In this document: positions 2,680 through 50,872 of the stretch, in pieces
Position numbering within the stretch: the stretch's first letter is position 1
Layout: the number at the start of each line of letters is the position of its first letter
From: Anthoceros angustus
Taxonomy: Eukaryota > Plantae > Anthocerotophyta
NCBI GenBank assembly: GCA_010909165.1
Contig: MU008184.1
Coordinates: 310,001 to 374,000, forward strand
Direction: 5' to 3'
DNA length: 64,000 bases
The notes under the pieces: generated by a model
Database searches by the model: none
What the model saw: only the letters and a program-made list of their open reading frames with translations
What the model was told of the DNA's origin: nothing
Position numbers and translations under genes: made by a program

Positions 2680-3811
2680 TTCCAGGCTTCATGGAATCTC
2701 CAGAAAAGGTCAAATCTGATAGAGATGCCATTGAGCAGAGTATACTACCGCTCCTTGAAAGGGAAGAAATCGCTCTCCTTGGCCATCGAGAACATGACGT
2801 CTCGTACGGCGTCGTGTGTAGCAATACGCTGTCCGCCCATTATACAATGCACTAAGTGGGCCCAAGGGTCGTTGATGGAGGCCCCACAGCAGCAGGCTGG
2901 AAGAGAACAGGCTAGTGGTTGGACCAGACCCAGGTGAAACCTCATCGCGGTAGAAAAAGAAGCTGGTGCGATTCGGAATGCTTGGATGCAAGGGCGGGCC
3001 AGAAGCCATGAATTTGCACCCTCTCCTAAGCAAGAGCGAAGGTGAGCTCCAGCGGGACGAGCAATGGATGAATCCAGAAGAAGACCATGCAACACCTACC
3101 CATAATGCTTCTCTTAGAGAGAAGCCTGCAACCCCCGAAGCCCGTCTGTGAGAAACGAGGAAAAAGAAGGCATGGCCTCCCTGGCTAGAGGGGGTAGGAG
3201 GCCCCTAGCTGACCTTAGGGACACTTGGAGGGGGAAGCACCCCTCCTCAACTCCTGCGAAAAAATTCTCCAAAATGCTGCTATCTTAGATAAGGAAGCGA
3301 GAGGCCAAAATCGGGGCCGATAAATTAATGTCTCCCAGAGACTGCATAACCTGCTTGTGGAAATCTCCAAGTTGAGAAAGAAAAACTGGAGAGGGGGGAT
3401 AGTGTGAATGAGGTACCCAGGGTGGCGCGCGAAGCAGGAAGAGAGGATGCCGAAGGCCACCTGTGGGTCGCTCAACCTTGAAAGGTCGTCGATATGCGCA
3501 AGATCTTCTTTCAAAGCAGCATCCACAAATTCCCGTATAAAGCCCGAGGACCCGATTGGGACTCCAAGGACCCGCAGCCCCTGTGGAGAATCAATATCCC
3601 CCCCGGGATAATGAAAAGGGGGCGTAATACCGGACGGGGACCAAACCTTACACTTTAAGATCTTGACCTTCAGGCCAAGGCGGGAGAGCTCCAAGGAGAA
3701 GAGGTCGAAAGCATCTTTGACTTTGTCCACCGGCCCCAGGATGTGGGTGTCGTCGGCCACGACGGAAAGAGGCACTCCCACACCGAGGAGGCAGTTATTC
3801 ACAGGGCCTTG
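2680..3811 (-). mobile_element. CRE-clade non-LTR retrotransposon, 3' half (RT C-terminus, Cys/His finger, start of restriction-like endonuclease region); degenerate
   Basis: Minus-strand CLFPS/VADDTHILG, GLRVLGVPIGS, RHPGYLIHTIPP, HLRSCLGEGANSWLLARP and CCCGASINDPWAHLVHCIMGGQRIATHDAVRD are typical CRE/RLE-type ORF motifs; frameshifts present. Confidence 0.85.
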
Positions 3812-6800
3812 TGTGGCGTGACTTTCGCTGATGGCCAGCCGGGCGCGCACAATCCCGTGTCGTTGTAGTAAGGAGTCCGCTCCCAAGAGAATGAATGGCT
3901 CCGTTTGCCACGTTTCAATTGTTCCTCACCTTACTTAGTGTCCGTTCAGTCTCAGCACGCCTATTTATCGTTTCATACCCAACTACCCGCAACGTTCACC
4001 GACAGGCCCGGTGCGGCCAAACGTTTAAGGACCCGTTCGCGTCCGTGTCGTTCAAGTTCGTCACTCATCCATCTAGTCCGTTCCTCTCACCCTGCTCACT
4101 ACACTCATCGTCCTTGGGGAAAAACGCGGGTGGCTATGCGGTCCGGACCTCCTCCGTAGCTCTGCGGGCCTCTCCGTCCGGGCTCTGCACGCCCTCCCGG
4201 AGTTCCTCCGGCTCACACGTTCCGGTCCGTCAGCAGCTGGGGCCCTTTGCTCGGGCGAGCAAGGGTCCCTAAGCTGCTCCCTGCACACACCACCACCGTT
4301 AGGGTCATCACTAAGACCTTGATCGGTCTCTCTGTCGGCCTTTCGATGACTCGGGACTCGCGTTAACAAGAAGGCACCCAAGAGCACTGCCCAAGGCAGC
4401 ATCAACACCAAGAGAAAGATGCTTTACTCGGGCGACCTCGGCCCTCTTATACTACGCCGGTCGCCGCCTTTATTACACCTCTATTACAGAGGAGGGCCAG
4501 CTCGGCGCCCTAATCGGCCGCCTACTATTCTCCCTATTCCTCCTATCTCCGCCGTCGGTGGTGGGGTGAGATGGCCTTGATTCCGTCTTGGCACCGGCCC
4601 AAAGCCAAGCCACGGCTGCGGCGCCGCAATCGGATGATCCATGGCGGGACCTACCTCTCCCAGGGTGCAGCCGGCGCTACCGTGGCGGCGACAGCGGTCA
4701 CCACTAAGTCCTCCTCCCCCTCCTCTCTTATCTCTCTGGCGGGCCCCTGTGCAGCGGGCCCTCCAAGGGCTGGATCTGCTGGGGCTGGTGTGGCGAGACT
4801 TTCGCTGATGGCTAGCCGGGCGCGCACAATCCCGTGTCGTTGAAGTAAGGGGTCCGCTCCCAAGAGAATGATAGGCTCCGTTTTGCCGTGTTTCACCCAT
4901 TTCTCACCTCACTTAGTAACCGTTCAGTCTCAACACACACATTCATCGTTTTATGCCTGACTACCCGCAACGTTCACCGAACAGGCCCGGTGTGGCCAAA
5001 CGTTTAAGGACCCGTTCGCGTCCGCGTCGTTCAAGTCGTCACTCTCCACTCTAGTCCGTTCCTCTCACCACTCACACTACCCTCATCGTCCTTGGAAGAA
5101 ATCGCGAGTGGCTGCAGTCCGGACCTCCTCCGCCGCTTTGCCAGGCCTCTCCGACTGGGCTCTGCACGCCCTTCCGGAGTTCCTCCGGCTCACGCGTTCC
5201 GGTCCGTCCAACGCTGGGCCGCTGCTCTGGACGAGCAAGGGTCCCTAGGCGCTATTCCCTGCACACACCACACACGTTAGGGTCCGTCACCAAGACCTTG
5301 ATCAGTCTCTCCGGTGCTGTCAGCCTGCTCAGTGACTCAGGACTCGCGTTACAAGAAGGCACACAAGGGCCTGCAAGAAGACGCGGCATCAACACCAAGA
5401 AAAAGATGATTTACTCAGAGCAGCCTCAGCCCTCTTATACTACGCCGAAGGTCGCCGCCTTTATTACACCTCTATTAAAGGAGGGCCAGCTCGATCGCCC
5501 TGTCGGCCGCCTACTATCCTCCCTCCTATCTCCGCCATGGTCGGTGGTGGGATGGCCTTGATTCGTCTTGGCACCGGCCCAAAGCCAAGCCACGGCAGTG
5601 CAGGCGCGCAATCGGATGATCCATGGCGGGACCCTACCTCTCCCAGGGTGCAGCCGAGGCGGCGGGCTGAAACGGCGGTCACCACTAAGTCCTCCTCCCC
5701 TCCTCTCTTATCTCTGGCGGGCCCATGCGGCAGCCCTCCAAGCTGGATCTGGGCTGGTGGCGAGACTTTCGCTGATGGCTAGCGCGCACAATCCGTGTCG
5801 TTGAAGGGTCCGCTCCCAAGAGAATGATAGGCTCCGTTTGCCGTGTTTCACCCATTTCTCACCTCACTTAGTAACCGTTCGGTCTCAACACACATTCATC
5901 GTTTTATGCGACTACATAGCGTTCACCGAACAGGCCGGTGTATAGCGTTTAAGGACCCGTTCGGCGTCCCGCGTCGTTCAAGTCGTCACTCTCCACTCTA
6001 GTCCGTTCCTCTCACCACTCACACTCGTCATCGTCCTTGGAAGAAATCGCGAGTGGCTGCCGGTCAGGACCTCCTCACGCCGCTTTGCCGGCCTCTCCGT
6101 GGGCTCTGCCCTTAGTTCCTCCGGCCGGCGTTCCGGTCAGGTCAGCGGGCCCTGCAGACGAGCAAGGGTCCCTAGGCGCTATTCCTGCACACCACACACG
6201 TTAGGGTCCGTCACCAAGACCTTGATCGGTCTCTCGGTGCTGTCGGCACCTCGGTGACTCGGGACTCGCGTTAAGAAGGCACACAAGGGCTGCAAGAAGG
6301 CAGCATCAACACCAAGAAAAGATGATTTACTCGGGCGACCTCACCCTCTTATACTACGCGAAGGTCGGGCGCTATTACACCTCTATTCAGAGTGAGGCCA
6401 GCTCGGCGCCTAATCGACGCCTACTCTTCTCCCTATTCCTCTTATCTCCACCGGTGGTGGGGCTGGGATGGCCCCTGATTCCGTCTTGGCACCGTGTGGT
6501 AGGGAAAACCCGGGGCACTCCCGAGGTCCTCCCACTATAGCGGCCACACTTATCCCACTGTCGCTTCGTACGTTGGGTTTCGTCCCATGAGACTTGTGTG
6601 AAAGTTCGAGGTCGTGCGATGCCCGATCGCTACCTGCAGAGACACAACTTCTTAGCCTTCTCAACGAGCAAGGCGCCTCCTCACCCCTTACGGCTGCCCT
6701 CGGCGCCCGGCATCGCCAATTCTCAACCTACAACGACACGACACGGTTGGGTCCACGCCTCGGCCGGCGGCTATCACGGCGCCCAGAGACCCCCAGTCCA

Positions 6801-9800
6801 CACAGCGATTTGGTCCCTACTTCTAAGACCACTCTTCTTCACTGTGGGCGCCCTTTTACTTGCAGTTGGGATTCGTCCCTTAGGCTGCACTGTGGCCTTC
6901 CACTAACACATTACACCTCTAATCCTCTACTCATCTTCTCATCCTCTCATCCTCTTCCTCCTATTCTAACCTCGGTTAGCTTCTGGCCGACTCGCCTTAC
7001 ACTGTTGCACACGGGTCGGCCTCCACCGACAAGTTCTTCCTTGGGCCAGTTCTTTATAGGTTTGGCACAGACAGTGAGAACCTCCGAGTCTTTCCGCATG
7101 GTCTACCTCAAGCCGAGAGTTCCCCAGGCATTGCCACACACCCAAAGCAAAGCAATTTCACAACCATTCACAAGGGGAGCAACTCGTTTAGGCACTTGCA
7201 AGGAGCAAGTCCTCCACCAAGCACTCCGTGCCGCGACTTCCTCTCTACAGAATGCGTTGGCTCACACTGACAATTCTCTGTAATGGCAAAGAACTCGATG
7301 AGGGTGGAAGCGCAAGACGTGATACTTTATTTTGTGAAATCCTCCTCCTCTTACAGGAGGCCTCCCACATACCGTGCCATCGCCCAATATTTTTGGCACC
7401 AATATTTTTGGCAATGGGTTTACTCAAAACTACCACCATGCACTTCATGAGTTGGGGATTCTTGGCCTTCAGAAACCCTTCACGGCATCCACACCTGGCT
7501 TCCTCCGGAACCAGCCTCATCCTTGCAGCTTGGCTCTTAGCAATCCCATGAGGAGAACAAACACCAAGCTAAGCACCAAGAACACTAAGGACGTCCCCCT
7601 CTTAGAAGAAATTCACTCTCAAAACCCAGCCAAGGCACACCAAGACCCAAGAAATTGGTGCCACAAGAAAAGAGAACACCAAGAGGAGATGGCGGCATCA
7701 CTCTTAAGAAGGCACACACACAGGCAGAGGGCGCACACACAAGCTCTAGCTCACTCCCCTCCCTGCACTTTTAGACAGCGCTCCAGTCTTCTCATGCGAC
7801 AATTATAGCAACAGAGCTCCTAAATTGCAGCCATAGATTTGAGTGGTTGCTGCAAGCATGTGGCCATATCCCATCCATTATTTCGCACACCAGCCATAAC
7901 CTCTAATTTCTATCGTAGCCATCAATCCCCACCATGAATCTAAGGATCCTTTCCATCCATCTTGCACAAATTCAAGACCCTAGCTGGTTTGCACCAAGAA
8001 GGCTCTTAAGTCATCAATCCTTCAGCTCCTGTGCAAGAACAACATTCCCTGCATCTCCTTGGCCCTAGGCGCTCCCATAGAGACCATCCTACCCAGCAAA
8101 ACCCAAGGAAAAAGCTCAATCCTCAGCCTCCAAAATCTGCGGCACTGCAACTCCCTACTAAGAACTTTCCCAATCAGCTCCCGTGTCTTTTGCAAATATA
8201 AGCTCATACTCCTCACAAAAGGCACCCCATCTGATCTGATCCACAGGACGCTTAACTCTGGAGTTCTTATATCCACATATCCAACACACCAAGTTTCCCT
8301 GTACATGCCTTGACACATACATTTTAGTCATTCATTATTGAACTCCTCACCAAGCTCTTCTCCACATTTCTCCTTAGCGAACTCCTTGACCAACTCTCGA
8401 ATCAGCCTACCTTGCTGCCCAGTTCTCCTCGCGGCCACCTCCCTTCACACCTACTTGCAGCCCAACTGCGAATTTTGCCTTCATGATGCACACCCCATTG
8501 CGATTCCTTCACCATATTGCAGCCCATCTGCAATACTGCCTTCCTGTGGCTGTGCCACCTCCATCTTGCAGCCCAGCTGCAAATTCAGCTTGCCATGAGA
8601 GCTCTACCATGGCCTCTCCTAGTTCGGCACACGGCCCTATCATGCCATCCTCACATCATTACTCCACTGCAAGTACTTCCACATGCTTCGGCACTGCCAT
8701 GGCCTCCTCTTGCAAATGACTAGCATTCGGTGCACCATAACTTCAGCTCTCTTCTCTGTCTTCTTCATCCTTCGCCTTGTGGCCTTCACCCTGCTGCAAC
8801 ATGTGCTAGGCACTCTCCAATTCCCCTTCCTGCCGCTGTAGGCTGCCTATCTACCCCACTCACCCTTGTACGTGTTGTTCCTATCGCGGTAGGGTGTGCA
8901 CCTATCATGGTAGGCGTCTCCCTATACACCAGTTGGCCCTATCCGGCCTGCATCTCTTGAGCTCTTCTCTGGGGCTCGCTCATGGAGGTTTCCTCCTCCT
9001 CCGGAAGCAACCCCTCGTGTTCTACCACTGCTTCCTCCTCTTCCTTCGCAGAGTCCTCCAGCCCTGATGCTGCAGCGCTTGACGATGCCTGTCCTCCAGT
9101 GTCATAAAAGGCAATGGTCTTTCCATGCTTGGCCTCAGATGGACAATCTTGAATGGATGCCAAGAACCTTCCAGCTCCTTGCAATTTCCACACACACACC
9201 CCGGCCTTGACCTCGCCCTTGCTCACAATTCCCCTGGCTCTTATACCCTTGCTTTTCCTTACGAGTTTCCAATTCTTTGTGATTTGAAGAAGGAATTCTC
9301 TAAGCGTTCACGATTCTTACATCTTCTCCAGCAAGTTGAGAGTCCCTTCTCCGCAATTTCTCTTCAATTTTGACATGCCTTGCTCTTCCCAACACTCCTT
9401 TGGGCTTGGGCAAGCATTGCCTTCTTCCTTCCTTCCTTCTTCTTCTCTTGTTGCACCCCTACTTGTCTTGCCTATTTTCCTCCTCTGCCTAGCTTGCGCC
9501 TCTTCTCTATCCTGCAGGCGCACGTACATTACTTGTGTGGGGCTCTTCTCTGACTCTTGGTGTGGCGCCTTCTGCAGTGTTGGCGCTTCCTCACCTTCAA
9601 GTTGTGACCTCCTACACATGCGTGATTATAAAGATAACTTGGGGTTAGGAATGGTAACTACCAATCTACTCGCCCTTGGATATGCACCACGTGGCACCTT
9701 TTCTCTGATTGATTGGAGTTTCCCAATTCCTCTTATACTAAGATACTATTTCCCCCTAGTTTCCTAACGGCCCAATCTAGCTTTTAATTTCCTATTCTGA

Positions 9801-10408
9801 CCCATTTATCTAGTCCACTATTGGTGGGCATATATAGTGGATATCTCCCTATCCTAAATTCCCTTTTTAGTCGAGATTTCGTCAGCCTACCGTGGTAGTC
9901 TGCCAGCCTACTGCGGTAGTCTGCCCTTCCTCTCAGCCTACCGGCGTAGTGTGGCAGCCTATGGCGGTAGTCTGCCAGCCTACCGCCCCTTCGGGCTACC
10001 TTCCTATCTGGCCCAGGGGTCATTTTGACCCGTTTCTTTTCCCTGAGATATCCTCTCTGCCTCCCTAACAGTATCCTACAACTCCAGCTTCAAGGATTTC
10101 AGAAAATCCCCGGCATGATCCCCTTCAATCATTTTTAGCCAAAAAAAATCAAGTTCGTTCGTCCTCCGGCTCTTTTGGGCTGGTTGCCCAAACTTTTGCG
10201 TTCCACACACCGGCGGCCCAAAGCCGAGCCCTAACGACTGCGGCGCACCCAATCGGATGATCCGAGGCGGACCCTACCTCTCCCGGTACCTCCAGTGCGC
10301 TCGGCGGCGACAAGCGGTCACCACTAAGTCCTCCTCCCCCTCCTCTCTTAACTCTCTGGCGGGCCCCTGCGCGGCGGGCCCTCCAAGGGCTGGATCTGCT
10401 GGGGTTGG
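3812..10408 (+). repeat. Three head-to-tail ~975-bp copies of the family A left terminus (units start ~3812, 4789, 5756; unit 3 interrupted by family B)
   Basis: Each unit starts (tg)tggcg.gactttcgctgatggc and ends gctggatctg(ct)gggg.tgg; unit 3 resumes at 10213 after the nested insert. Confidence 0.85.
6495..10207. mobile_element. Family B element nested in family A (TGTGG...CCACA, 5-bp TSD CACCG), 3.7 kb
   Basis: caccg at 6490-6494 and 10208-10212. Ends TGTGGTAGGGAAAA vs reverse-complement TGTGGAACGCAAAA match 11/14. Host repeat is continuous across the removed insert. Confidence 0.88.
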
Positions 10409-11984
10409 TGTTCGGTGGCTCTCCCCCACTCCCTGAGTCTGGCCCTCAGGACCCCGTCTCGACTCCGGAGTCCGGACCTCTAGGTCCGGCCTTCCCTCTG
10501 GGGTCTAGTTCTCTGTGTTCGGCCTTCTTTCTGGAGTTCGGGCCTCGGGGTCCGGACTTGCCTCTGGGGTCCGGTCCTTTGGGCCCAAACCTTCCCCTGG
10601 AGTCCGGACCTCAGGGTCCGGTCTCGTCACTAGAGTCTGGATCTCTAAGTCCAGACTTCCTTGGGGCCACTGAGCGGCCTTTCCTCGAGTCCGGACAAAG
10701 TCCGGACCCACTCTGCGCTCAGCCTGAGCCTCGTTGGTCGATGTTGGGCCGGTAGCCGCCTCGGCCAGTCGCGAGCCCTCTTCGCCTCCGCCTCCCCCGT
10801 GCAGAGATCTTGACCGTGCTTGGGCCTCCTGCGCTTGCCTCACACTGGAGGACCTTGGTCCGGTCTTCCCGATCCTTCGGATGCGCTCCGCCTCCGTTTC
10901 CTCTCGTCTGCGAGGACTTCGCCTTCTTCCTTGCCTCCTAGGCCTCCATCTGCTCACGGAGGAGCACCATGCGCCTCCTTGTGGCCTCCACCTCACAGGT
11001 TTCTCGGCCGTCCGTGAGTCCCAGAGCATACCGTCCATGGCAGTGGCAGGGACCCGCCGTGTCTCTTCCACAGGCACCTGAGACCCCAAGAAGTCCGTGG
11101 GCGGGCATCTCGTCCGCCAAGGACCTCCATACCGCAGCCGGAGTGAGTCCGGACCTCGGGGTCCGGACCTAATCAAGACCCTTAGGTCCTGAGTCGAGGT
11201 CCGGAGCCTCACCTTCTTTTACGCCTCCGGTGGGCGGCCTTCCGGTCTGCGTTCCTCTTCTCCTTCCTTGGAGGTTGGCGTGCCCCACACATGAATTAAG
11301 AACGGCGATAGCGCGCGGAGGAGGCTGCTCACACCTCGACATGAGCTTCTAATTGATCTGGCGAATGATCCTTCCCGATCGCCCCTCGCCTCTGCGGCGC
11401 ATGCGGGAACACCGCAGATTGTCACCAAGGTGATCTACCTTGGTGAGCATGTTCCGATGGACAATGATCGCCATGCCTCACCGCCACTGGAGGACCTTGG
11501 TCCGGTCTTCAATCGCGCGGACCTTGCGCTCCGCCTCCCCCGTTCTCCTCGATGCGGCCGAGGACTTCCGCCTTGCCTCCTAGGCCTCCATCTGCTCTCT
11601 GGAGGAGCACCATGCGCCTCCTTGTGGCCTCCACCTCACAGGTTTCTCGGCCGTCCGTGAGTCCCAGCATACCGTCCATGGCGGTGGCAGACCCGCCGTG
11701 TCTCTTCCAGCCACCAGTGAGACCCCAAGTCCGGGGGCGGGCATCTCCCGGTCCGCCAAGGACCTCCATACCGCAGCCCGGAGTGAGTCCGGGCTGGGCT
11801 GTCCGGACCTAATCAAGACCCTTAGGTCCTGAGTACTGAGGTCCGGAGCCTCACCTTCTTTTCTGCCTCCGGTAGGGCGGCCAGCCCCTTCCGGAGTGCG
11901 CGTTCCTCTTCTCCTTCCTTCAGGAGGTTCGCGTGCCCCCACACATGAATTAAGAACGGCGATAACGCCGACGGAGGAGGCTGC

Positions 11985-12572
11985 TCACACCTCGCCCAGA
12001 GCTTCTAATTGATCTGGCGAAGATGATCCTTCCCACCGCCTCCGCCTCTGCAGCGCATGCAGGAACACCAGCAGATTGTCACCAAGGTGATCTACCTTGG
12101 TGAGCATGTTCCAGTGGACAATGATCCTGGCCACTGCCCTCACCCTCCTGTCCAGCAAGTCCGACATCAACCAGCCGTTGGTTGTTCGTTGCGTCCCTGG
12201 CTTCAGCAGGGCGGCCTTTGCCGCCTCTATCTTTCCTCTGGCCTTGAGAGGTTCCGGGACTACGCCCCCAATTTCCTCCGCTGGACGGTTGTACACCGCC
12301 CTCAGGACCTCCACGGTCCACCTCCTAGGGTCCTCTCGAAGGCTCTTAGACCGAACCTCCTTGTTGGCCGCTGCCAACATCTTCCGGGCGTACTCCCGGA
12401 CTAGGGCGACGCTGTCGAAGGTCCAGACAGCCTGGAAAACGTCCAGGTGCCATTCCTTGACCAGCTCCCCCGCCTCCTCGATTCTGGCCCAGTCCGGGTG
12501 GCGCTTGGTGGCGATGTTGCATTCACCAAGCTCCATGGCTCCCCAAACCTCCGCCGCTTTCTTGGGTCCCAT
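11985..12572 (-). CDS. 195-aa ORF inside family A element, resembling the plant retrotransposon-associated 'putative plant transposon protein' (Transposase_32 / Athila-ORF-like)
   Basis: LVREYARK...WTVEVLRAVYNRP...DLLDRRVRAVARIIVHW...LLVFLHAL resembles the LVREFY..N / W..FI / LLYAI pattern. EDPRRWT..YNRP.EE.GG is retained in copy 2 (~45790-45850, ~47050-47120). Family call is by eye. Confidence 0.55.
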   Translation of the reverse strand: MGPKKAAEVWGAMELGECNIATKRHPDWARIEEAGELVKEWHLDVFQAVWTFDSVALVREYARKMLAAANKEVRSKSLREDPRRWTVEVLRAVYNRPAEEIGGVVPEPLKARGKIEAAKAALLKPGTQRTTNGWLMSDLLDRRVRAVARIIVHWNMLTKVDHLGDNLLVFLHALQRRRRWEGSSSPDQLEALGEV

Positions 12573-13242
12573 CTTCCCGCTCCTTCGCTGCCGGAGTGCG
12601 AGGCTCGCAATCGTCCGTTCCTTGGCGCGGCGTCGGTTGCTTCCTCGCGATCGGCGGAGGGTGCCTGGCGATCACAAAGACAACGCCGAGGGGCCGGGTG
12701 TCGGCGCGAGCATGCGAAGATCGCTCAAGTTGCTTGGAAGAATGACGCCTCGGTCGGAGTAACCGTCGGCGGAGGTGGCTCTTCTTTGTCCGTGGCCGAG
12801 CTGCAGCTTACTCTCGCCTTACGCCCGCCTACTCGGCCTTCTGTTTGTCGCGATGCGGGCGTGAATACCTGCTTATAACGGCCACTGGCAATGCTACGGT
12901 CCTGGCCTGCTGCATGCCCGTCTTCCATTCAGGGCCGTCCACGTGGCGCCGCTCTGTCTAACTCACGCCCCAACTTCTAAATTACCTTACTTGGCGTACT
13001 TATCCCATTCTGACCCGGAGTGGGGTCCGGACTTATCTCGGTACTCCGGTGCGTGGTCCGGGGTCCTTCGGAGTGGCACCGGGGTCCGTTACCTACCCCG
13101 GAGTCCGGAGTGCACTCCGGAGCACAGTCCGGAGTGCCGTCCGTGCTTATTCCTCCTTTTCCGCCTTATTTTACACTCCATACCTACGAAAAAAAACCAA
13201 CCCCGCTTATTTCCCAACCCCAAGGGGAGTCCGTTGTCCACA

Positions 13243-13690
13243 CCTTGAAATGCACCATAGCAAAAAGAGCTTTTAGCTCCCCCCAAGGGATCTCCCTGCC
13301 TGGTTCCCATTGCGGAGTCACGCACGGAGATCCCCTCCACCGAGGGGCCATGCTGATAATATAGGTTAGAGGGGGAACCATAGAAAGGGCGAACAAAAGG
13401 AATAAGACTTGATAGTTGCCCGACCATGTCTTTAAGCTCTTGGAAGATGGCCGCCCTGGACACAATGTTGAAAGCGTTCTCAACATCGACCTGAAGGGCA
13501 ACCCAATCCGGATGTAGCTGGAGAAGCGCCTCGACTCCAAAACTCATCGTCTCACAGCCCCCCGGGGTGGCGATGCCCGGAATTGTTCCCTGAGCTGGAG
13601 GGCAAAGTTGCGGCTAATAACACGTAGGAACGCCTCTCCCACGACGATAGGGCACACCCATGGTGTGAGCTTCTCCATGGCCACTGTCTT
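13243..13690 (-). mobile_element. CRE-clade non-LTR retrotransposon, 5' part of RT
   Basis: GV.PIVVGEAFLRVISR, PGGCE, ALQVDVENAFN and GTRQGDPLGG/ALFAMVHF are RT motifs collinear with the 2680-3811 half. Confidence 0.88.
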
Positions 13691-14686
13691 TGATAATTTA
13701 CCCTCTATAAATATGCCCTCCGTAAATATGATTTTCTGTCTTTATGTTTCCCACCCTCTACTCCCTAGTTGGGCAAATCTGTTTGGATAGTTAATCCTAA
13801 CATAGTTTAGCTATACATATATGACTTAAGATTTACACATGAGACACTTACTTAGAGATACTTCATAAACAATTTTGTAATACACTTCATTGATGTATTT
13901 CTTTATACAAATAACACAAGCTTCGGCTTTGTAGCATGGTACCAGAAACTAACTAAATGCTATGTCTGATTGATGGTGCAACGTTACCCAATTAAATACA
14001 TAATTCACATCTCTAAGTGTAAGAGATGTATGATTGTGTGCCTAGCTTCTAGTCATTGCCTGCGCTCTAGACGTAGTTAATATGTCCCACTAATGTACGT
14101 GCATTAAAAAAACAAAAAAGCATGAGACTTTCGACAACATCCTAAGTTGCGGCTGCAAACAAGAGAACTAAGAAACATAAGACCTCCAAGAACATCAAGT
14201 TTCTCCCCAAGTTTCCACGTTTGTGACTGCATTTTCGCACCAACGTGAACTGGTAAAGCATCATGTGGCCGAAAAGAGGCCGAAACTCCCCTTCGGCATT
14301 GTGGGGTTAAGAATGCACGTGAGGCGGCGGTGCACGCTCTACAAACGTCATTTAAAGCGTGAAAGCCGAGAGCACAGGCGCGGGGGCGTTGGTACACGTG
14401 TCCAAACAGCGTAATGCCGCAGGCATGTACATAGGTATGTACAGACCTCGGCGTGCTTACATGATGAGCTGCGTCGCCACTGCAGCAGATCAATCTTGAC
14501 GGCCGGTACTTTGACGCTCCGGTCGGTACTCACCACCAGCGACTATGACCGGTGCTTCCGGCGGCCCGGCCGCGACCAGCTCAAAGCAATCGGCGTCGGC
14601 GCATTGCGAGGAAGACGAGCTGCACTTGTTTTGCGGCAACCCGCCTGCCGGCAAACGCAGATCGATTGCCCATACGTGCGCTCGAA

Positions 14687-16955: not shown

Positions 16956-17656
16956 ACATAAATACATAAATATGTTCATGCAACGTTTTCTATTTCTGAA
17001 AGCTTGAGGTGGAGCTTTGGTTTGAAAGCGTCAAGAAGCTATTCATGGGCAGGTGCCATATAGCTAGTCGAGTCCAATCCGAAATTCGTAAAGGTTTTGA
17101 GATTTTGCTTTCCAGTTCCCAGATCTCCAGAGAAATCTTCCAGAATAGATGACATTCAATCTTCGTTTCCGGTGGGAGAGACGAATACATTCGTGGATTA
17201 TATGTGTCCTGCAAGTTAGTTCAAAGTTTCGCAGACACCAAGACCTTCCGAGGTTATCACAACAGAGCGCCACAGGCTTGTTTTCCCACAGCACAAAAGT
17301 CGACCTGGTGGATCCCTCAGTTTTACAGCTGCAATCTATGTGCTGGACTCGGTTAAACCCTAGCTAGTATTGAGCACTACAGATAGTACAACTTTGGAGC
17401 GCAGACAATATATGTTAAAGACAGTACAAAGGTGCCAGCCTCCGAAAACATCTGCTGAGCTGCCTCAAAGGGAATCCCAGAGCTGGCAACATAAGCTAAT
17501 GGAATCAGAACTACTAGAAAGGCGGTTTGTCATCCACTCCTCCTGGCACAATAAAACATCTACTCTTGATTTCAACTGCCAATGTCATCTCCAGGTCCGC
17601 AAACATGCAAACATCAAAAGGCGTCATTGGTCCATCTGCAGGCAGGTCCACACGGA

Positions 17657-20600
17657 TCACAAAAGAAAGTTACCGGATAATGCCGGATCACGAAATGGGG
17701 CTCCACCATAAGTTGCGTTTGTTGATGAGCCTTCTGTTCGCCCAGCCGACGGCGGTGGTGCCGCTATGGTAACAGCAGAACATGTGTAGCGTGCCTTCTT
17801 GGCAACTCTTCTGACGTGCTGCCGAAGTTTTCTTGTTCTTGCCTGGATCAAGGGATTCTGAGGAGGTGGAGTTATCGGCACTGCGAAAGGTATTTCCTGA
17901 GAGCGGCAACCATGATCTTCCACGGGGGTTCTACACCCTATCTTGCACAGTACAGGGAAAGGTCTTGGAAGCCCACCTCTCTTGAATGTTCTCCTTTCCA
18001 TCTCCACATCCTCGGCTAGAGCAATTTCCTCCATCGTCCACAATGCCCACTTCCTATGAGGAGCCGGCTTTGAGCATACACAGTTAGAAGAGTCCCCCTT
18101 TTCTGAGCTTTGATTAGAAGCAGCAGGTTGTGTCTGCTTCACACACCGGAGTGCAGTCGTGCTTAAAGGTGCTGAAACAGGAACAGCCAGTGGCACGCCA
18201 ACGGGTCGCTCCCCATGTGCCGAACTGTAGCTCCTGGGTTCATCTGGACCTGAGGAGATCTGAGGGTAACTCTGTTTCCCGTTGTTTTTCAGGGGAACAT
18301 AACTCAAATACGTTTTGAAAGCCACGGTTCGTCCTCCTTCTTGAATGGCATATGTCCTCCCTGCTGTTTCCACCGGTGACCATTCTGGGTGATGCGTAAC
18401 CTTGTTGGCTTCTTGATGCTCCCATACTTGGTCTCGCTGAGGAAATATTGTCCAGCACCTGTACCTGCTAGTCAACCTATACTGATTCAGTACGATCACC
18501 CTAACACTCTAGCTGCAATCATGAAGTGCCGGCACGAAAACAAGTCAGGAACCTCACCTGAGATAAGTTCTGCGGGATGTACCGAATAAACGTCTGCCTC
18601 CTTAACGAAAGGGAAGTGTTGCAGTGTGCGCAGCACATGACTCGCACTCAATTGTTTGTATGCTTGAATCAGACGAGTCATGTCCAAGTCTGTCAGCTTG
18701 GGAGGACGCCTCACAGCCAGAGGCACAGGTGGCACAAGTTCTGTGCACAAGTCCATCAATGAACTGGCAGCAGCTCTCAACTCCCGACCTTCTGGGGTAC
18801 CGGGCTGGAGTTCTTGCGTCACTGTGAGTCGAGATGCGCAAGTATGGGAGCTGACCTGCTGGATGGAGACTTCATGTGCTGATTTCGCTTGCTCTGTTGA
18901 GCATTGTAGTAACCGGGGTGACCACTCCTGATGCAGAATACCAAACCAGGAGCTTTCATCGCTCACCGCCTTGCGCTTCCGTCGGAGTATACTTGCGTCC
19001 GGGTCGCTGCCGGGCTGCACATGTGGCAGGCCCATACTCTCGGTAGATATAGAGAACTCGGAAGCCTGGATCTCAGATGAGACTATGGTGCTATAAACAG
19101 GTAAAACCGTGAACTCAGAAATAACTGGTGGGCACCTCCTAGGGCGCTTAGTTGCTAGCGTCGTAACCTGTCGTCGGTGACAGTCCGTTGCTAATGCCAA
19201 CATATCATGAGCCCCATGGTTGCCTCTCTGGATAAATGCCTTAGTCACCGCCGATAGTCCGACAGTACGCTCGTCTTGAGGAAGATTATACATTGGCCCT
19301 GATTGAGGCAGACCATATTGATCAGACAGTCCTGCATTCCACGAGGTGTCTTGAACTGAAGGATGAAGACGTCGGAAGGGTGCTCTTTCATCTGTCGCTG
19401 TTGGCAGTGCGGGTACACGTAGCCCGCAGACTGACGCCAGATCACCTGATGGGGACCAAGGAGCATCACTACTGCTGACGATTGCCTTAGAAGGAGGCCA
19501 GCCTTGGTGGTTCATGGTCATGTCCTGATCCGAGGCCTGGGATGTGATGTATAGCTGAGTCTGTCTTGATCCGTCAAACTGGAGATCTTGCTGAACCAGC
19601 GATAAACCACCATAGCCCTGATTGCAGCAACCTTTTGCCACATCAAGTACTTCAGAGCTGGAAGAGACTTTTCCTGCGCCATTCTTCAGCTCTTTGGCCA
19701 GAGAACCACTTGCGGACGTATGTCGCAAAGATATGCTGCTGTGCACCACCGCGCTTAGCTCGCAAGCCTCTGAGAAGTTGTAGTGCAGATGGGAAACCTC
19801 CCTGCAAGATTGCTGGATGTAGGAACCTCCTAACACAGGATCCGTTCCACGACCAGAAGAATGCAAGCTCTCCATGTCTGCATCCGTGGTCACTGAAGAG
19901 AAACTGTAATAGGCAGGATCAACGGCATCTTGAATGAGACAAGCATCTGAAAAGCCGCAACAGCCTCCAGGAGCTGAAGCACGGTCTTCGTGATCTCCGT
20001 TCACTTTGTGCACCAGTTTCTGCAGAGCTGAGGAGAGCCCTTGGTCCGATGTCATGTGCTCTTGGATGTTGTGGTTGCCCGGGACCTGTTGCACTTGTAT
20101 CCGTCGGTGAAAGGCCATTTGGTGAGAGATGTCAGCTCCGGGATTGTAACCCTGCAAATGAGCCATCATGAGAGTCAAATAACTGCCTTCCTCAGGCTGG
20201 TCTGGATGACGCAGCGAACCTGCAGTGAGCACCTTGGAAAGCTAGCTGCTACTAGACTACCGACAGCAATTGCCACCTGATCGACACGAAGCGCACCAAC
20301 AGGGGGGGCCTTAAGCTTCTACTCTTCCAGATGAAGAGATCCTTACCTGGTAGAATCGCGTGCGGCGAATGTCGAACGTCACACTGTCTGCCACTTCATC
20401 AAAACCAGGTGCAACAAACGCTGAGTCCAGTTCGCTACTCCAACTGCCACAAAGATACACAAATCAGTCGCTGAGTGCTACGGAACATGACTGAGCTAAA
20501 CTGAAACTGTGACGGCATTGCACAGTGACGATTTTCCAAAAGCAAACAGCAAGCAGTCCGATCAAGAAGCCATGACGCTCCAGATGCCCGAACAGCTCTC

Positions 20601-20904
20601 TCAACTTGGGAGCAAGCGCATCAAGTGACACGAGCGTATCAATTGGTAGCCACATGCGTGCAACGAGCTGAGCGAATTGTCTCTACCTCATATCCGTCGG
20701 GGATGGATCGAAGCTGTTCTCCGCAACTGACGGCGGGTGGAGAATGCGGAGCACAGAGTCCATACAACTGTCACCATCGCGGTCTCCTGATGCGTATGGT
20801 CCTCTGAAGCCCGCGTCGACAGCTGGATAACAGGGAACAGCCGCCTGAAGTTGCAGGGCCGACAATGAGCGGTGCATGTTCACTTTCCCGCCCACTCGAT
20901 CCAT
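17657..20904 (-). CDS. Divergent NAC-like gene (copy A) with very long Ser/Gln-rich N-terminus and C-terminal NAC domain; apparent frameshift near 18335
   Basis: LDMTRLIQAY...KEADVYSVHPAELIS, phase-1 intron 18465-18557, QYFLSETKY..RITQNGHRWKQQGGHMPF, then in another frame GGRTVAFKTYLSY and LWTMEEIAL. Upstream donors near 20686 and 20347; upstream exon model tentative. Confidence 0.68.
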
Positions 20905-22687
20905 CGATGAAGCAAGCTAGCAGACTCAGCAAGCTATCTCACAGATTGTAACGGATGTAGCGAGTTGTGCACCGGGGACACCACACACTCTGAAGCGCAT
21001 TGATGAAGGCACATTCCACTTTGTTCAGTGCCTGGAAAGGCTGCACTCTGGACACCTGAACTTCACAGGTTTAGGCACGCGGTGCCACTTCTCCTGCGGC
21101 CACTTGACAGCCTCCCTCAGTCAGCAGCCTCCCTCCACAAAGAAAGAGCCGGAAGAAGTCTGGAGGAAAACAAGCACAGCTCTACCCGGACAGGACATGA
21201 CGCAGGTCTGCAGTTCTCATGTAATTCCCTACGCCGGAATGACAGCCTAAACAAGCACAGATTCCAGCCTCCGCTTCCACCCGTCTTTCCCCTCAAAATA
21301 ACCAGCAGACACGAGAACCCTCGACTCAGTGGAAGCTGGCAGCAATTCCACACTTCTCAGCACCGCGATGCAGCTGATTCACTACGGGACGTTCTGCAGC
21401 CTCACACAACCTCCCTCAGCTCAAAAATGCTCATCTGCTTGACGTCTTCAATCATCGAGAAGATCGCGACCAAGAGCAGCCACAGCATCGGAACGCAGAG
21501 AAAAAGAACGACGAAGATGAGCACGACGTAGAGCGACATGGTTACAACTCTCCCTCGCAGCACATTCCCTCAGATTGCACCTCAGCAGCCCAGATACTCC
21601 TCACAGGCAGCATCCAAGGGCGCAGCAGAGGCGAGCGACAGGGAATGGCGCACAGAGAAGCGCTGGGCAATTGCGGTCCAGTTTAAGGAGCTCCAGGGGC
21701 GCGGGAGCAGCACTGGAGCAAGAGATAGCTGCGGTGCCAAGCGCAGAGAAAGAGAGGCGCTGGCGCCAAGCCTATCCTTCCCCACTGCACTCACTCTGCG
21801 CTCTTCGGAGGGAGAGCACTTGTAACCTTGTTGGTGAAGGCAGAATAGCCGCCCGGGCTAGCTTCACCCGCCGTCGTAGTCCCATTTAAGTGGATTACAC
21901 GGAAGTGTTAGGTGGGGGCTTAATAGCTGGCAGGCGCGGGAGCCGGCACCTGTGTGAACTTATGTGGCCTCCTTGTCCTTGCCCCGACAAAGGTTCGCGG
22001 GCCGCGGCCCCGGATTCGTCGAGTTCGGCGCAACTGGCACAACTCTCCCTGGCCAAACCGTTAGGGCTGGGTAAACGGAAGCTTCGGTGTGTCCTTTGGC
22101 CCCGTCTGTTAGCGCAAGGATGACTCGGCAAGCACAGAACCGCACCCTTCCGCATCCAAGACTTCAGCCATTTGCCCGCACCTTCTTCAGCTGGGATGCA
22201 AAGCAGCTATTTGTGTGGCTGTCTCGGGGACTCTTCTAGCCGTCCATGAACGCTTTCACGGAGCGGAGCTTTCTTGAAATTCTTACATTTTTTGGGTCTT
22301 GTTGGATAGTGTTGCAGTACTTCTTTGCTAAGGAAATTCATAGGAGCTTTCTTTGTTGAGATCTTAGAGTACATTCCAAGAACGTTGTTGTAAAACTTCA
22401 AAATTGAACATCTAAGATATATAATGAGCTCATTAGCTATGTTACCCATTGGTAAGAGAGAACTTAATGTTCTGGTGTGTGCATTTTTCAAGATGAAATT
22501 TTTTATGCATGTAGGATCTCATTCTTTGCAATTAATCATAAGTTCACTAAGATTGCATTGAAATAAGTAAAATACTCTAGCAATCTTGACAATCTCAAAG
22601 TTGGAGAGTGATATGATTCTCATTTTACAGAATAATCAAGTGATGTGGACATTATAACATCACAAATTATTTAGCAACTGAGGAACT

Positions 22688-24562
22688 ATGGAACTTGATA
22701 AAGATAAACAATCTCATAAAGAACAAGCTTCCAAGGACAATTTGCATACACAGGTAGATGAATCAAGACCCCAAGAGCTCGGGGATAGTGTTCCTCATAA
22801 AAGTTCCTTATCTCAGAAAAAATCAAAAATGGATCTTGTTGATCCAAGAACTTCTACAATATCTCTTGCTGGAACTGCTCTTGATAAATATAGTAAAGGA
22901 GCTTACTTAGAGGGATATATTTATGCACCTGGATCAACCCCTTCTACTATAGGATCAAGCAGGCCTACTTTGTCAGACTCAAGTCCTCTTCAAGGTTCTA
23001 GTCCTACCACTAGTTCAAGTCCTCCAGCAGGGTCTAGGCCTCAAACCCAAGGATCAAGTCTCCCAAGAGGCTCCACACCTCTGTCTCCTTCGGCCTTTAA
23101 TTTGAGATCTAGTCTGCCATCCAATTCACAGAGTCCTCCCTCCTTTTCCCCATCAGCGGGTAGTCCTCCTTCTGGCTCTTCTAGTACAGGGTGGACTCCA
23201 CGAGATTCATCTGGTACTACAGCTCAATTGACCCCTTCTCAACTAACTGAGAGGAGAGCTAGTTCTTGTGGAGCCACTGGCACGAGTGAAAACCGATCTC
23301 AAACATCTAGGCAAGCACCAGAAGATGGATCTCGGCCTATGTCAGATGTGCCAACACCACCCTCATCACGACCAAAGACCCCTATTCAATGGCCTTGGAG
23401 AATAAGAAAGCCTAGATGGCGACGAGGGTTCACAGACATCCCTCCATCTTCATATCACTTAGACATAGATGCTCCCAACCTGCATTTGGTTGAGCAATCT
23501 ATGCGGACTTTTACCCCAGATTATTTCTCCAGAGCCATTGCAAAAGTTATAATCCCAAAAAAGGCTTCTGACTACCATGATGAATCAGGATCCATGCTAT
23601 TGTGGGGTAGTGCAGGTGGCCGATATCTTGGTGATGTAGTTGGAGGTTTACCTCATGGGCATGGGCAACACTGGGTTCCTCATTCAATGTCTCGTATGGG
23701 AGCTTTAAGATTGCTTTATGATGGACAATGGGAGTATGGGATGAAAACAGGACATGGATGTTTATATCATGCAAATGGCCAAGAATATCGTGGAGAGATG
23801 AAAAATGGGGAGCACTTTGGTCATGGTTGCATGAAATACAAGGATGGCTCTATTTATGAGGGGAAATGGTGGCGAGGCAGGAAACATGGTATTGGAACGT
23901 ACTACTACATAGATGATGGATGTTATATGGGTGCATGGAAGAAAGATCAAAGAGATGGATGGGGCATATATTGTTGGCCATCGAAGAGGAGAAAGTGGGA
24001 AGGAGAGTGGGTGAATGATTTCCCTTATAGTGGTGTCATGGCACCTTTGGAGGATGCTGAATATAAAATGTTTAACATGGCTAACATACCTGACGAATTT
24101 TCAAAGACATTTTGGAATAGATTCACAGACAACATACTTCCTCAAGAACCACTTGGAACCAGACGTCCCATAAAACCGCTCACAATCAAAAGAATAAAAC
24201 TTCGTCATCCTAGTCTATCAATCTATTCAAAGATTGCACCAATGCGTAAACTAAGAGACCAAGATAAAAATGATGGAAAATTGTTCCAAAAAGAGTTCCA
24301 AAACAAGCTAAGGGGAAGTATGCCTTATGAGCATCTAGAAGCAATGAAACATTCTTTTCACAAACTTGCCCCAGGATATATGCATCGTACTATATTACAC
24401 GGAGCACAAGTACGAAGGTTGGTTAACATTGGACGAATAGACCCTGACACAAATGAAGGACAAAAGCTCACTGTGCATTTGCAAAATGTGGCAAAGAAGA
24501 ACAATAATGGGATCAGCTTCAACAATCTTCTTTACTCCATACTATCCTACCATGACCCTTGA
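22688..24562 (+). CDS. Intronless MORN-repeat protein, 624 aa (MORN3/RSPH1-like), Ser/Pro-rich N-terminus, possible degenerate EF-hand tail
   Basis: Six-seven repeats YxGxWxxGxxHGxG (YDGQWEYGMKTGHG, YEGKWWRGRKHGIG, YMGAWKKDQRDGWG, WEGEWVND); long intact ORF. Confidence 0.9.
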   Translation: MELDKDKQSHKEQASKDNLHTQVDESRPQELGDSVPHKSSLSQKKSKMDLVDPRTSTISLAGTALDKYSKGAYLEGYIYAPGSTPSTIGSSRPTLSDSSPLQGSSPTTSSSPPAGSRPQTQGSSLPRGSTPLSPSAFNLRSSLPSNSQSPPSFSPSAGSPPSGSSSTGWTPRDSSGTTAQLTPSQLTERRASSCGATGTSENRSQTSRQAPEDGSRPMSDVPTPPSSRPKTPIQWPWRIRKPRWRRGFTDIPPSSYHLDIDAPNLHLVEQSMRTFTPDYFSRAIAKVIIPKKASDYHDESGSMLLWGSAGGRYLGDVVGGLPHGHGQHWVPHSMSRMGALRLLYDGQWEYGMKTGHGCLYHANGQEYRGEMKNGEHFGHGCMKYKDGSIYEGKWWRGRKHGIGTYYYIDDGCYMGAWKKDQRDGWGIYCWPSKRRKWEGEWVNDFPYSGVMAPLEDAEYKMFNMANIPDEFSKTFWNRFTDNILPQEPLGTRRPIKPLTIKRIKLRHPSLSIYSKIAPMRKLRDQDKNDGKLFQKEFQNKLRGSMPYEHLEAMKHSFHKLAPGYMHRTILHGAQVRRLVNIGRIDPDTNEGQKLTVHLQNVAKKNNNGISFNNLLYSILSYHDP

Positions 24563-25118
24563 TATCCATTATTTTGTTTAAAAAACATTCACACATTCAC
24601 ATGCTTGATGAGTTGTAAATTAGTGATAACACTATGCACTTGGCGGGCATGAAAACGTGCCTGACATGTAAGCTTCAAGAACTGAAATGAAGCTTCTTGG
24701 ATTGAGAAGAGCTGAGCTAGAGGAGAAGATAACATTCGCAAGACGGTAGAATATCATTGGCTTACACGGCTTGGCAACCTGAAAGGTGGCAGGCACGAGT
24801 GTTGGGATGTGAGGCGAAGGCTATGATAGGGATGGGGCATGGGGCAAATGGGGCGAAGGGGCAAAGGGGATAGGGCCAAGGGGAGGGGTGACGCGAGGAT
24901 GGTGGTGGTGATGGAGGGAGTCAAAGTCATGATCCCGATGCGTCAGGCCCTCGGGCTTGACCTAAGACCACACGCGTTTGATGCAATGCGGAGGGGCAGT
25001 GAAACCGGGATCTTGGTGTACCGGGGAGCGATTCGCATGACGTCTTGAGCTACGCGCTCGCGCGCTCGCATCCACGGGTGGGAGATCGCCTACGCTGAAA
25101 TCCTCTTAGTTCAGGTGC

Positions 25119-26940
25119 TTAGGCGTGGAGAGGAGGAGGAGGTGGGAGTGGGCCGAGCTCCCAGCTCCCAGCCCCAGGGTTGAGCGCAGCAGAGCAGAGC
25201 ATTGGCGGGGAGGTGACGTATGTACTTGCCGATGCCAGAATGGCTCGGGTAGTGTTGCTAGTGTTTGGTACTGTTGTGACTGTCTTCCCAGCGGCCTGTG
25301 GCAGCGAGCCGTGCTTGCTGGAGCAGCGCAGCGCATCGGACACAGGCCTGCCGCTTGTCCTCACATCTATTGAATGATGGCGGGCTGGCCAGTGGCAGGC
25401 TTGCCCAGGAATAATTTGCGTAATTGCTGCGACACTGTACTGTCCCGCAACGGCAACAGCTGCTTCATTTATGTACACTGGCTGCTGCGACGGGTAGGCC
25501 CGATCCAGGCCGCATGCCTCTGTGCTGCGCTCTGGTCGATTCCTCTCTTCAAGACCGGAACGGGGCCAGGACGAGGACGCAGGGATGGTCACACCCGACG
25601 GGCTTGGCCGCTTCCAACGGAGTTCCAGTCCTGTCGTAGCCGCAGATGGTTTGGAGCTTTCTCCCAAGATCTGGCTCGTCCGTCCGCCGGTTCGGAGGTT
25701 TGTTGCATGCGCATTTACTGGCGTTGTGGTAGGAGTCACAACTGGAGGAATTGGCGCCTGCTGTTTCCACTGGCGCCTTGTCCGATGTGATGTGCTCGGG
25801 GCTCCTGGAGTCTGAAGGCGTACAGTATGCTTTATGTATGGGCTTTGCTGCTGCGTCGGTACAGAGATTCCCTGACTGCCTAGTTGATGTGCAAGCAGTA
25901 AGCAGTGTGTGAGAGGCTTGCCAGCATGCTCTGGCACTGGTCCTCTGTCACTGGCTCCGGCTTACATGTACAGATGTAATCATTGTCGGATTGGAGCTAA
26001 TCAGGCTGCAAACAAAATGATCAGGCTATCATATTGTCAGTGCGTTGCTACTCAATCCGGCTTCCTTGAGGCGAGAGGGAGTAAACCTCGTGTGAGAGTC
26101 AGGGGAAGATGTTAATCATAGGGCAATTATACGGCGGATTCTGCCAACTGTGGACGCCTGTCCAGCATGCCGTGACGTCCAGTATCTGGATTCTGGCAAC
26201 CTGGCTCTGCCCCGCGCCCTAATTACGACCTAGGACACAGAGCAGCACCAGTACATGGTCACGGAGTAGGAGGCGGACCGGCGACGGCGGTAAGGGAATC
26301 GCACGTCGAAGGGAAGCTCATCGCTATCGCTTCCCGTGCGAGCTCTGACGCGTCATCTTCATCTGCTCCGCATTGTCCCGGGCTCCACAGATTTGAATTC
26401 TGTGTTACCGGGCGGGTGTGACATCACTACAAGGATGTTGCTTGCGCGTTGGCGCTGGTGTCATCCTCGGTCAGCAGCGGCGACCAGTTGCCTGTCACAC
26501 GCGACTGCGACTGTGGAATCGTTGGGTTGCAATGCATGTGTTGAGCAGCAGGATTGTGGAGTCGGACTGACTTGCTTCCAGGAAGAGATCCAAGCCAGCT
26601 AAATTCCAAGCAACATCTGTAGGCGGGGTTGGAGGAGCCTGAGGTTACATGTAACGAACCGGGCAGCAACATTTTCGACAAGACAAACGAGGTTTGGCCT
26701 GTTGCGCGGTTGCAGTACCGACAGCAAGCGGCCAAGACAGTCGAGCAGCCTAGAGGAAGTCGGGGGAAACCTTTTTAGGGCAGCGGTGACAAACATAGCA
26801 AAACAAAAAAGGTGGGGCCGCGGCGAGCAGTTACCCGTCCCCATCGCGTCGCCCTGCCTTGCACACTGTACAGCACTGCGCATTGGCATTGGTTCAAGCG
26901 TGCGAACGTCCGGGGAGCGGGGCGAAATTGGGCGCAACGG
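25119..26940 (-). pseudogene. Possible further NAC-like remnant(s), copy A; duplicate at ~52414-54480
   Basis: HITSDK.QWKQQA is nucleotide-similar to RITQNGHRWKQQG of the 17657-20904 gene; KRFPPTSSRLLDCL and WKQVS upstream; several frameshifts and stops. Confidence 0.35.
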
Positions 26941-27189
26941 AACGGTTCGGGTTGGGACGCAAACGGGCTACCGCGGGTGGCCGTTGCCCGTTGCCACTTG
27001 CGGCTGATAGCGACGGCACGGCAGTTGGAGGCGCATGATGGATTGGAGTTTCATGGCCGTGCCGTCTATCATGGCATGCATGCCCCATGCAAGTGGGTAG
27101 GCCATCATCGTCCCTTGCCCCCGTTCCGTTTGCCCGTCCTGCCAAATCGCGACGCGGCCGGTCCAAATCATCGCGACGATCACCCCCTC

Positions 27190-29489: not shown

Positions 29490-30478
29490 GCTTATTTTTA
29501 GAGGGTAACCTATCAAAGATGGTCATCCATCCACTTATACGCCGTCTCCAACATCTAAATTTAATATATAATTTCTACATACAGTACAAGAACGGTTGTT
29601 TCGAAACCATCAAGTCATGCATTTCATATGAAATATATGATTGCATGCATGGTAGAATACACAAAAAAGTATGTTCTTGTACCAAGTCATCTTGCATATA
29701 GTGCATGAGTGATGGATGAAGTCTTTGGGAAAGTTTTGTGTGGCGTCTAATTGTATGCCGTCTCCAACATGTAAATTTAATATAGACTTTCTACATAAAG
29801 GACAAGAACGGCTTTCTCGAAACCATAGATTTATACATTTAGTATGAAATATATGATTGCATGGTCTAATACACAACAATGTATGTTCTGGTACCAAATC
29901 ATCTTGGCAGATAATGCATGAGTGATGGATTAAGTCATGAAGAGAGTTATGTGTGGTGTGCAACCAACACCATAGTGCATATACAGTGGCTTCCACATTC
30001 TCATGCATTCTTAAAGATCTTTCCATATTCTCCATACAAGCATAGTACTTTTCTTCCTATGTCCATATCTCACCTTTTAGTTCTTCATTATCATGAAAAG
30101 TGGGTGAAAAAATAAGTTTGGCTATTATTGGATAATCTATCAGCAATTCTTTCATAAATAATGAAAGTCTTCTTCTAAGACCCTTTTGGCTATAGCATGC
30201 TTAGTTGCTTCATCCCCGATGTGACGACACTTCACATGCCAGGCTTCTAGCCCGGTGAGTACTAGCTTCAAATTTCCTTCGTGCTCATCACTCTCCATTC
30301 CTGTAATCATCTTCAAATAATTTTGAATTGATTCATAAGACTTTCTTATGTTGTACATGCCAGAATTATATTCTTCATATTCTTTAGTATGTGAGGCTCT
30401 CATATATGCTTGAAATGATTCCTTGTCCTTGTCAAAGTATTGTTCTACATACTCTTGGCCAATATTTTTGAGAGACAT
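29490..30478 (-). pseudogene. AT-rich RING-H2 finger gene or remnant with tandemly duplicated, degenerate second finger
   Basis: CIICQDDL...CNHIFHTKCINLWFRESRSCPLCRK (C3H2C3). A second copy CTICK...ACNHIFHMKC is frameshifted. Upstream 108-aa ORF 30152-30478 on the same strand. Confidence 0.8.
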
Positions 30479-50020: not shown

Positions 50021-50117
50021 AAACCCTCATCGCCATCTAGGCTTTGTTATTCTCCAAGGCCATTGAATAGGGCCCTTTGGTCGTGATGAGGGTAACATTG
50101 GCACATTTGACGTATGC

Positions 50118-50870: not shown

Positions 50871-50872
50871 AA

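Follow-up and report, generated by a model that had tools for sequence, protein, structure and literature searches.

A 64,000-nucleotide stretch of the genome of the hornwort Anthoceros angustus (assembly GCA_010909165.1, contig MU008184.1, positions 310,001 to 374,000 of the forward strand; hereafter the window, numbered from its first letter) contains three multi-kilobase insertions with retroviral-type ends. Two of them, FamA-1 (3812-13242; 9431 bp, or 5713 bp without the element nested in it) and FamA-2 (41303-48008; minus strand; 6706 bp), are members of one family, whereas the third, FamN (6495-10207; 3713 bp), is unrelated to FamA and lies inside FamA-1. The sense strand of FamA-1, judged from the gene that it carries, would likewise be the minus strand. 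All three elements have 5'-TG...CA-3' termini of the form TGTGG/CCACA; those of FamA-1, read from the sequence, are TGTGGCG at its start and GTCCACA at its finish. Each is flanked by an exact 5-bp target-site duplication (TSD): CCTTG for FamA-1 (left copy 3807-3811, right copy 13243-13247), TATTC for FamA-2 (41298-41302 and 48009-48013) and CACCG for FamN (6490-6494 and 10208-10212). Inverted repetition of the ends is short: it is perfect over 5 bp in the FamA copies and imperfect over roughly 21 bp in FamN (about 14 of 21 positions matching). Two conclusions are firm: the three elements are non-autonomous units that arrived by integrase-type insertion, and FamA carries a selected orphan gene.

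The insertions do not have to be recognized by their end motifs, because empty sites for FamA-1 and FamN establish independently that they are genuine. Deletion of 3812-13247 fuses minus-strand positions 13613-13248 with 3811-3218 into a single open frame of about 320 codons, which traverses the reverse transcriptase (RT) motifs A, B and C of a long interspersed nuclear element (LINE)-like protein (NAFN, QGDPLG and ADD). FamA-1 has therefore split a LINE-type RT frame into an upstream half (13248-13613, minus) and a downstream half (3218-3811, minus); a weak RVT_1 match was obtained for the upstream half only, and the downstream half, searched alone, gave no family or PDB match. For FamN, the empty site is provided by sister sequences, as two neighbouring repeat units in FamA-1 and the corresponding region of FamA-2 are uninterrupted there and hold a single CACCG. 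In a motif scan, the whole window contains five TGTGG..CCACA pairs with a matching flanking 5-mer, among them FamA-1, FamA-2 and FamN, compared with 0-4 pairs (mean about 2.3) in offset controls. With TG..CA ends, 5-bp inverted tips and 5-bp TSDs, the three elements were inserted by a retroviral-type DDE integrase. Such an enzyme exists in this genome in gypsy form, since a decayed Ty3/gypsy remnant with an aspartic protease, an integrase H2C2 zinc finger, rve and SH3_Tf2-1 lies at 38769-40329 (minus), in the same stretch that hosts FamA-2. The initial annotation had proposed, from letters and TSDs alone, two independent integrase-type insertions at 3812-13242 and 41303-48008 whose ends are not direct repeats of each other; this description holds in full, with ends and TSDs read directly, an empty site for FamA-1 and an inverted end of just 5 bp.

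Both terminal regions are common to the two FamA copies, as had also been noted, and the alignable parts of FamA-1 and FamA-2 are 75-78% identical; the copies are old relatives rather than recent ones. Conservation is uneven along the element. At the window-left end, 56 of the first 57 nucleotides are identical between the copies, compared with about 77% overall, and the opposite, window-right end is conserved for just about 20 nt. The window-left part of FamA-1 is a tandem triplication of a unit of about 975 bp, termed u (u1, 3812-4788; u2, 4789-5755; u3, 5756-6494 plus 10213-10408, the gap being occupied by FamN), of which FamA-2 has a single copy. Each unit opens with the element-end motif (TGTGGCG in u1 and u2, GGTGGCG in u3), and the three are mutually 84-87% identical. 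Because they differ by 13-16% with many indels, yet the LINE frame interrupted by FamA-1 is still open for about 320 codons, the comparison suggests that the u-u-u array was present in the source element before FamA-1 inserted. Invariant blocks of the unit (4442-4452 and 4469-4485 in u1, with counterparts in u2, u3 and FamA-2) contain, on the minus strand, AATAAA followed 17 nt later by TATAAG, which could act as a polyadenylation signal and a promoter element.

Read in the sense of its gene, FamA runs from a TGTGGAC end through about 430 nt of conserved blocks, a leader, the open reading frame (ORF), tandem arrays, a minisatellite, a purine tract and the u block to a CGCCACA end. In the 5' region of FamA-1 (12573-13242, minus), the conserved blocks fall within roughly the first 430 nt, and the leader between them and the ATG is poorly conserved; the blocks hold GATAAG motifs, CACGTG (12940-12945) and TTATAA (12873-12883), and from these motifs they may be read as a promoter. 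On the other side of the gene, the variable arrays are different in the two copies. FamA-1 has a tandem duplication of about 640 bp (10843-11482 and 11485-12144, 86% identical) that overlaps the 3' part of the gene and is decaying neutrally, and FamA-2 has its own 3.3-kb array of units of about 495 bp (42384-45687). Counted from the window-left end, these arrays are followed by a region of about 1.2 kb common to both copies. Also present in both are a 33-nt minisatellite with TCCGGA-type palindromes (10431-10647 in FamA-1; 42249-42552 in FamA-2) and a conserved purine-rich tract on the minus strand (10419-10433; 42231-42245), which lies 11 nt upstream, in minus sense, of the u region. The G+C content of FamA is 59-62%, compared with 46-51% in the surroundings, and the plus strands of FamA and FamN are pyrimidine-rich (57-60%). 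A run of eight A residues on the plus strand lies 46 nt from the window-right CCACA end in FamA-1 (13189-13196), 48 nt in FamA-2 (47953-47960) and 59 nt in FamN (10141-10148); it is an architectural feature common to the unrelated FamA and FamN, for which a poly(A)-signal-like role, a role like that of a polypurine tract (PPT) or a bend are all conceivable.

The gene of FamA is an intact 195-codon ORF on the minus strand of FamA-1 (12572-11985; ATG at 12572-12570, stop at 11987-11985), whose product has a protein-like composition. Its homologue in FamA-2 (about 47338-46800, minus) is decayed, with the start codon kept and frameshifts and stops thereafter. Comparison of the two copies gave a ratio of nonsynonymous to synonymous differences per site (pN/pS) of 0.43-0.44 in the ORF frame and of 1.07-1.15 in the other two frames, and the mismatches at codon positions 1, 2 and 3 numbered 44, 45 and 79 (p=7e-4); no codon periodicity of mismatches was seen in the flanking leader or the u unit. 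On the strength of the low pN/pS and the excess of third-position mismatches, the gene was under protein-level selection during diversification of the family. Synonymous sites differ by 0.59 per site in the ORF, compared with 0.22-0.25 in the u block. The protein belongs to no family in Pfam or PHROGs, a word search returned no match, and nothing similar was found among PDB sequences or in the ESM Atlas. A HMMER search of 1.84 billion representative proteins returned a single match, P0005, which is spurious, being a translated tandem repeat. A single-sequence AlphaFold model is all-helical and, with a pLDDT of 48.8, unreliable. The FamA protein is therefore an orphan, newly described with this family. 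FamN has no convincing ORF and shows no similarity to the FamA protein.

The initial annotation had offered two readings of the units, large gene-bearing solo LTRs (long terminal repeats) or a non-autonomous class mobilized in trans, and both are still plausible. It had also supposed that the units may themselves carry a protein frame. This stands in that FamA encodes one; the plus-strand frames, however, are unconserved compositional artefacts, and the real gene is the 195-codon minus-strand ORF. The plus-strand frames, which reach 332 codons in FamA-2, were rejected as genes, being rich in S, P, R and G, unconserved, and with equal tblastn scores (FamA-2 frames against FamA-1) in several frames and on both strands; a word search with a FamA plus-strand ORF gave no match. 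The tandem arrays, including that of FamA-2, were likewise rejected as coding repeats, as they have no 3-periodicity and contain many frameshifting indels.

No enzyme that could account for the insertions was found within them. In agreement with the earlier finding of neither paired long terminal repeats (LTRs) nor gag-pol, no Pfam domain of gag, protease, RT, RNase H or integrase was detected in any ORF of the elements, and in none of the three did one end resemble the other in blastn at word size 7 or in a repeat search. FamA-1, FamA-2 and FamN have no pair of terminal direct repeats and no long inverted repeats at their ends, and FamN has no internal repeats. Nor is there a split repeat of the A..B-A-B type: the end motifs are confined to unit starts and element ends, there is no internal CCACA-TGTGG junction, and nothing like CCACATGTGG occurs inside the elements. 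No tRNA was found in them and no Rfam match at gathering or relaxed thresholds, and their terminal regions fold no better than shuffled sequences. Scans of metagenome, viral and prokaryote-genome collections with DNA patterns for further copies returned 0 matches. Three weaker candidates were discarded: matches to a primer-binding site of the initiator methionine tRNA type are at chance level only; a likeness of 12-14 nt linking the 5' subterminal part with the 3' end, considered as an R repeat, reflects a GAGTCCG/TCCGGA motif repeated along the whole element; and motif pairs common to FamN and FamA (TATA-like, ACTTATCCCA) are within the estimated chance expectation.

These absences bear directly on two explanations. 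The first is that FamA and FamN are ordinary non-autonomous LTR retrotransposons of the LARD, TRIM or TR-GAG type, whose two LTRs have decayed past recognition. Such elements are non-autonomous LTR retrotransposons defined by paired LTRs; they resemble FamA in having no pol, in sometimes possessing a single structural ORF and in being mobilized in trans, and the sole small protein of FamA, all-helical in its model, could conceivably be Gag-like. They differ from FamA and FamN in their defining feature, as paired LTRs are absent here. The ends are well kept (56 of 57 nucleotides, intact TSDs), yet sensitive comparisons of end with end are empty in all three elements, and the ORF has no match to a Gag family. 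We therefore consider this explanation most improbable. Membership in Transib was also rejected. Transib elements combine a 5-bp TSD with CACWATG-type termini; the TSD length fits, but the present ends start with TG and finish with CA, which is the opposite polarity.

The second is movement as DNA, with FamA and FamN being non-autonomous cut-and-paste elements mobilized by a Ginger/TDD-type DDE transposase encoded elsewhere. DNA transposons need no terminal direct repeats, and the resemblance to Ginger1 and Ginger2/TDD is real: the TGTGG end fits the TGTNR terminus of Ginger and Gypsy, an integrase-family enzyme is implied in both cases, and TDD-4/5 make 5-bp TSDs (PMC2836005). In contrast to FamA and FamN, however, the Ginger and TDD elements bear long terminal inverted repeats and encode a transposase themselves; the inverted repeats of Ginger are 40-270 bp long, with TSDs of mostly 4 bp (PMC2836005), compared with inverted ends of 5 bp for FamA and of roughly 21 bp, with mismatches, for FamN. 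No transposase is encoded in FamA-1, FamA-2 or FamN, and the integrase-bearing remnant in the window adjoins a retroviral-type protease and hence comes from a retrotransposon. Since the long inverted repeats that mark such transposons are missing, we regard DNA-level mobility as very unlikely.

The explanation that we favour, tentatively and at a little short of an even chance, is that FamA-1, FamA-2 and FamN are solo LTRs of Ty3/gypsy-type retrotransposons with unusually large LTRs, those of FamA being gene-bearing. The LTR of FamN would be about 3.7 kb long, and that of FamA would have a core of about 4 kb, swollen to 5.7-6.7 kb by internal tandem arrays. Each unit would once have been an LTR-internal-LTR element in which recombination between the long LTRs removed the interior and left the TSD. 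LTRs and solo LTRs have been analysed previously (PMC7251063). Because long LTRs recombine readily, the finding that all three units are unpaired would be explained. The presence of a gypsy-type integrase in the same window as FamA supports a source of this kind. By analogy, the tandem repeats and minisatellites within the elements also favour it, as these are common in the U3 regions of LTRs, and the near-invariance of 56 of 57 nucleotides at one end, compared with about 77% overall, would fit a U5/att end beside a primer-binding site. If FamA is an LTR, its gene would be an accessory gene embedded in that LTR and running in the same sense as the purine-rich strand. As the boundary of the u unit coincides exactly with the integrase end, the best explanation of the triplication is that a member of the family inserted into a fellow member of like orientation, and that homologous recombination and unequal exchange then took place.

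Two known systems illustrate what such units might be. A legume comparison system is similar to FamA and FamN in its TG..CA ends, short inverted tips, 5-bp TSD, multi-kilobase length, internal tandem repeats, absence of enzymes and occurrence as single TSD-flanked units; the present elements differ from it in that the window holds no full-length partner, that FamA contains a constrained protein gene and that their host is no legume. Long LTRs are expected to collapse efficiently to solo LTRs. The sag gene of mouse mammary tumour virus (MMTV) is encoded in the U3 of a retroviral LTR and would resemble the FamA gene, if FamA is an LTR, as an accessory protein-coding frame inside a terminal repeat unit. 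MMTV is, however, an animal retrovirus with a 1.3-kb LTR, and there is no sequence relation, the FamA protein being an orphan.

Several observations weigh against large solo LTRs. No full element with FamA or FamN as both of its LTRs was found, all three copies in the window being unpaired. At 3.7-6.7 kb, the units would rank among the largest LTRs known, and a constrained gene within an LTR is rare, MMTV sag being the classic case. The conserved end blocks of FamA (about 430 nt and about 1.3 kb), which flank a fast-evolving middle with the ORF, form a pattern that suits a complete non-autonomous element at least as well as it suits an LTR. Moreover, the purine tract directly upstream, in minus sense, of the u block occupies the position of the PPT in an A-interior-PPT-B layout.

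The last two points lead to the main rival explanation. On this view FamA, and possibly FamN too, would be complete without any repeat, a non-autonomous A-gene-B unit derived from a permuted (A-genes-B-A-B) Ty3/gypsy lineage whose integrase cuts within the reverse-transcription repeat. Seen in minus sense, A (promoter, R and U5) would correspond to roughly the first 430 nt, the orphan gene and the variable arrays would form the interior, and the u block, with the purine tract ahead of it, would represent B. Recombination between B1 and B2 could produce such a unit, as could an integrase cutting linear cDNA at both internal sites, and the result would be a dead-end copy. A precedent exists in the green lineage: Klebsormidium nitens has Gypsy elements whose repeats are split in DIRS-like fashion (A-coding-B-A-B), and it is the only species with a published Gypsy of this kind that carries Dnmt3 (PMC5890265). 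KnitGypsy-Dnmt3 and its relatives among Gypsy elements (PMC5890265) share with FamA and FamN the integrase-type insertion, ends that are not a simple LTR pair and ends that would be palindromic when joined; unlike them, FamA and FamN repeat neither A nor B and have no gag-pol and no Dnmt3. If the ends of FamA were joined, they would form the perfect palindrome CCACA-TGTGG. The gene-bearing, fast-evolving middle between conserved end blocks and the conserved purine-rich tract that both FamA copies have 11 nt ahead of the u block favour this layout, the promoter-like motifs near the minus-sense 5' end lie where it needs them, and B plus A would make a repeat of normal size, about 1.4-1.7 kb. However, neither FamA copy has a B-A-B tail or an internal CCACA-TGTGG junction, no recognizable primer-binding site follows the putative A block, and the u-u-u array of FamA-1, with nothing between its units, is not predicted by this model. 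The connection with the published lineage is, moreover, indirect. We consider this explanation possible but rather unlikely. The broader proposal, in which FamA and FamN would not be solo LTRs but a class of repeat-less, integrase-inserted A-gene-B retroelements, with ends cut inside the reverse-transcription repeat, one lineage-specific orphan gene each and propagation in trans by permuted-repeat Ty3/gypsy elements, is in our judgement slightly more doubtful than its application to FamA.

If the elements are solo LTRs, as we tentatively prefer, then a retrotransposon of the plant lineage can carry a selected accessory gene inside a multi-kilobase LTR, and such LTR genes would inflate annotation as 'unknown genes'. 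Elsewhere, the best-known example of such an arrangement comes from a single animal retrovirus. If the elements are instead complete units that have no repeats, they are relevant to replication and end selection in integrase-using elements whose repeats are permuted or split. On either reading, the 195-residue orphan protein stands as a defined candidate, its sequence being under constraint within the family and without a relative among the 1.84 billion representatives searched.

Further features lie around the elements. In the gypsy remnant, the integrase zinc finger comes immediately after the protease, and neither RT nor RNase H separates the two; the remnant consists of a pair of tail-to-tail fragments or else represents an element that was rearranged. 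The stretch containing FamA-2 and this remnant is bounded by a 200-bp inverted repeat (38566-38764 and 50127-50328; 80% identical), which starts with TGTTG and for which no matching TSD was found. A segmental duplication of about 9.7 kb (17410-27086 compared with 31350-38568 plus 50869-54704; 87-96.5% identical) covers a MORN-repeat ORF (22688-24562) as well as two large ORFs on the minus strand that have no annotation. Its second copy is split by a 12-kb stretch bearing transposable elements and contains a 1.3-kb tandem duplication (35616-36945 and 36930-38255; 98%). Positions 23341-23530 in the first copy (about 190 bp) match, in the opposite orientation, a 73-bp tandem-repeat region at 49783-50111 that borders the right inverted repeat of the 12-kb stretch on its inner side, which suggests that an older transposable element was deleted or rearranged at the same site. 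Finally, a RING-H2 ORF (29613-30056, minus; zf-RING_2, E=2.8e-13) lies in an AT-rich stretch (38% G+C) that has short tandem and inverted repeats in common with 13687-14429.

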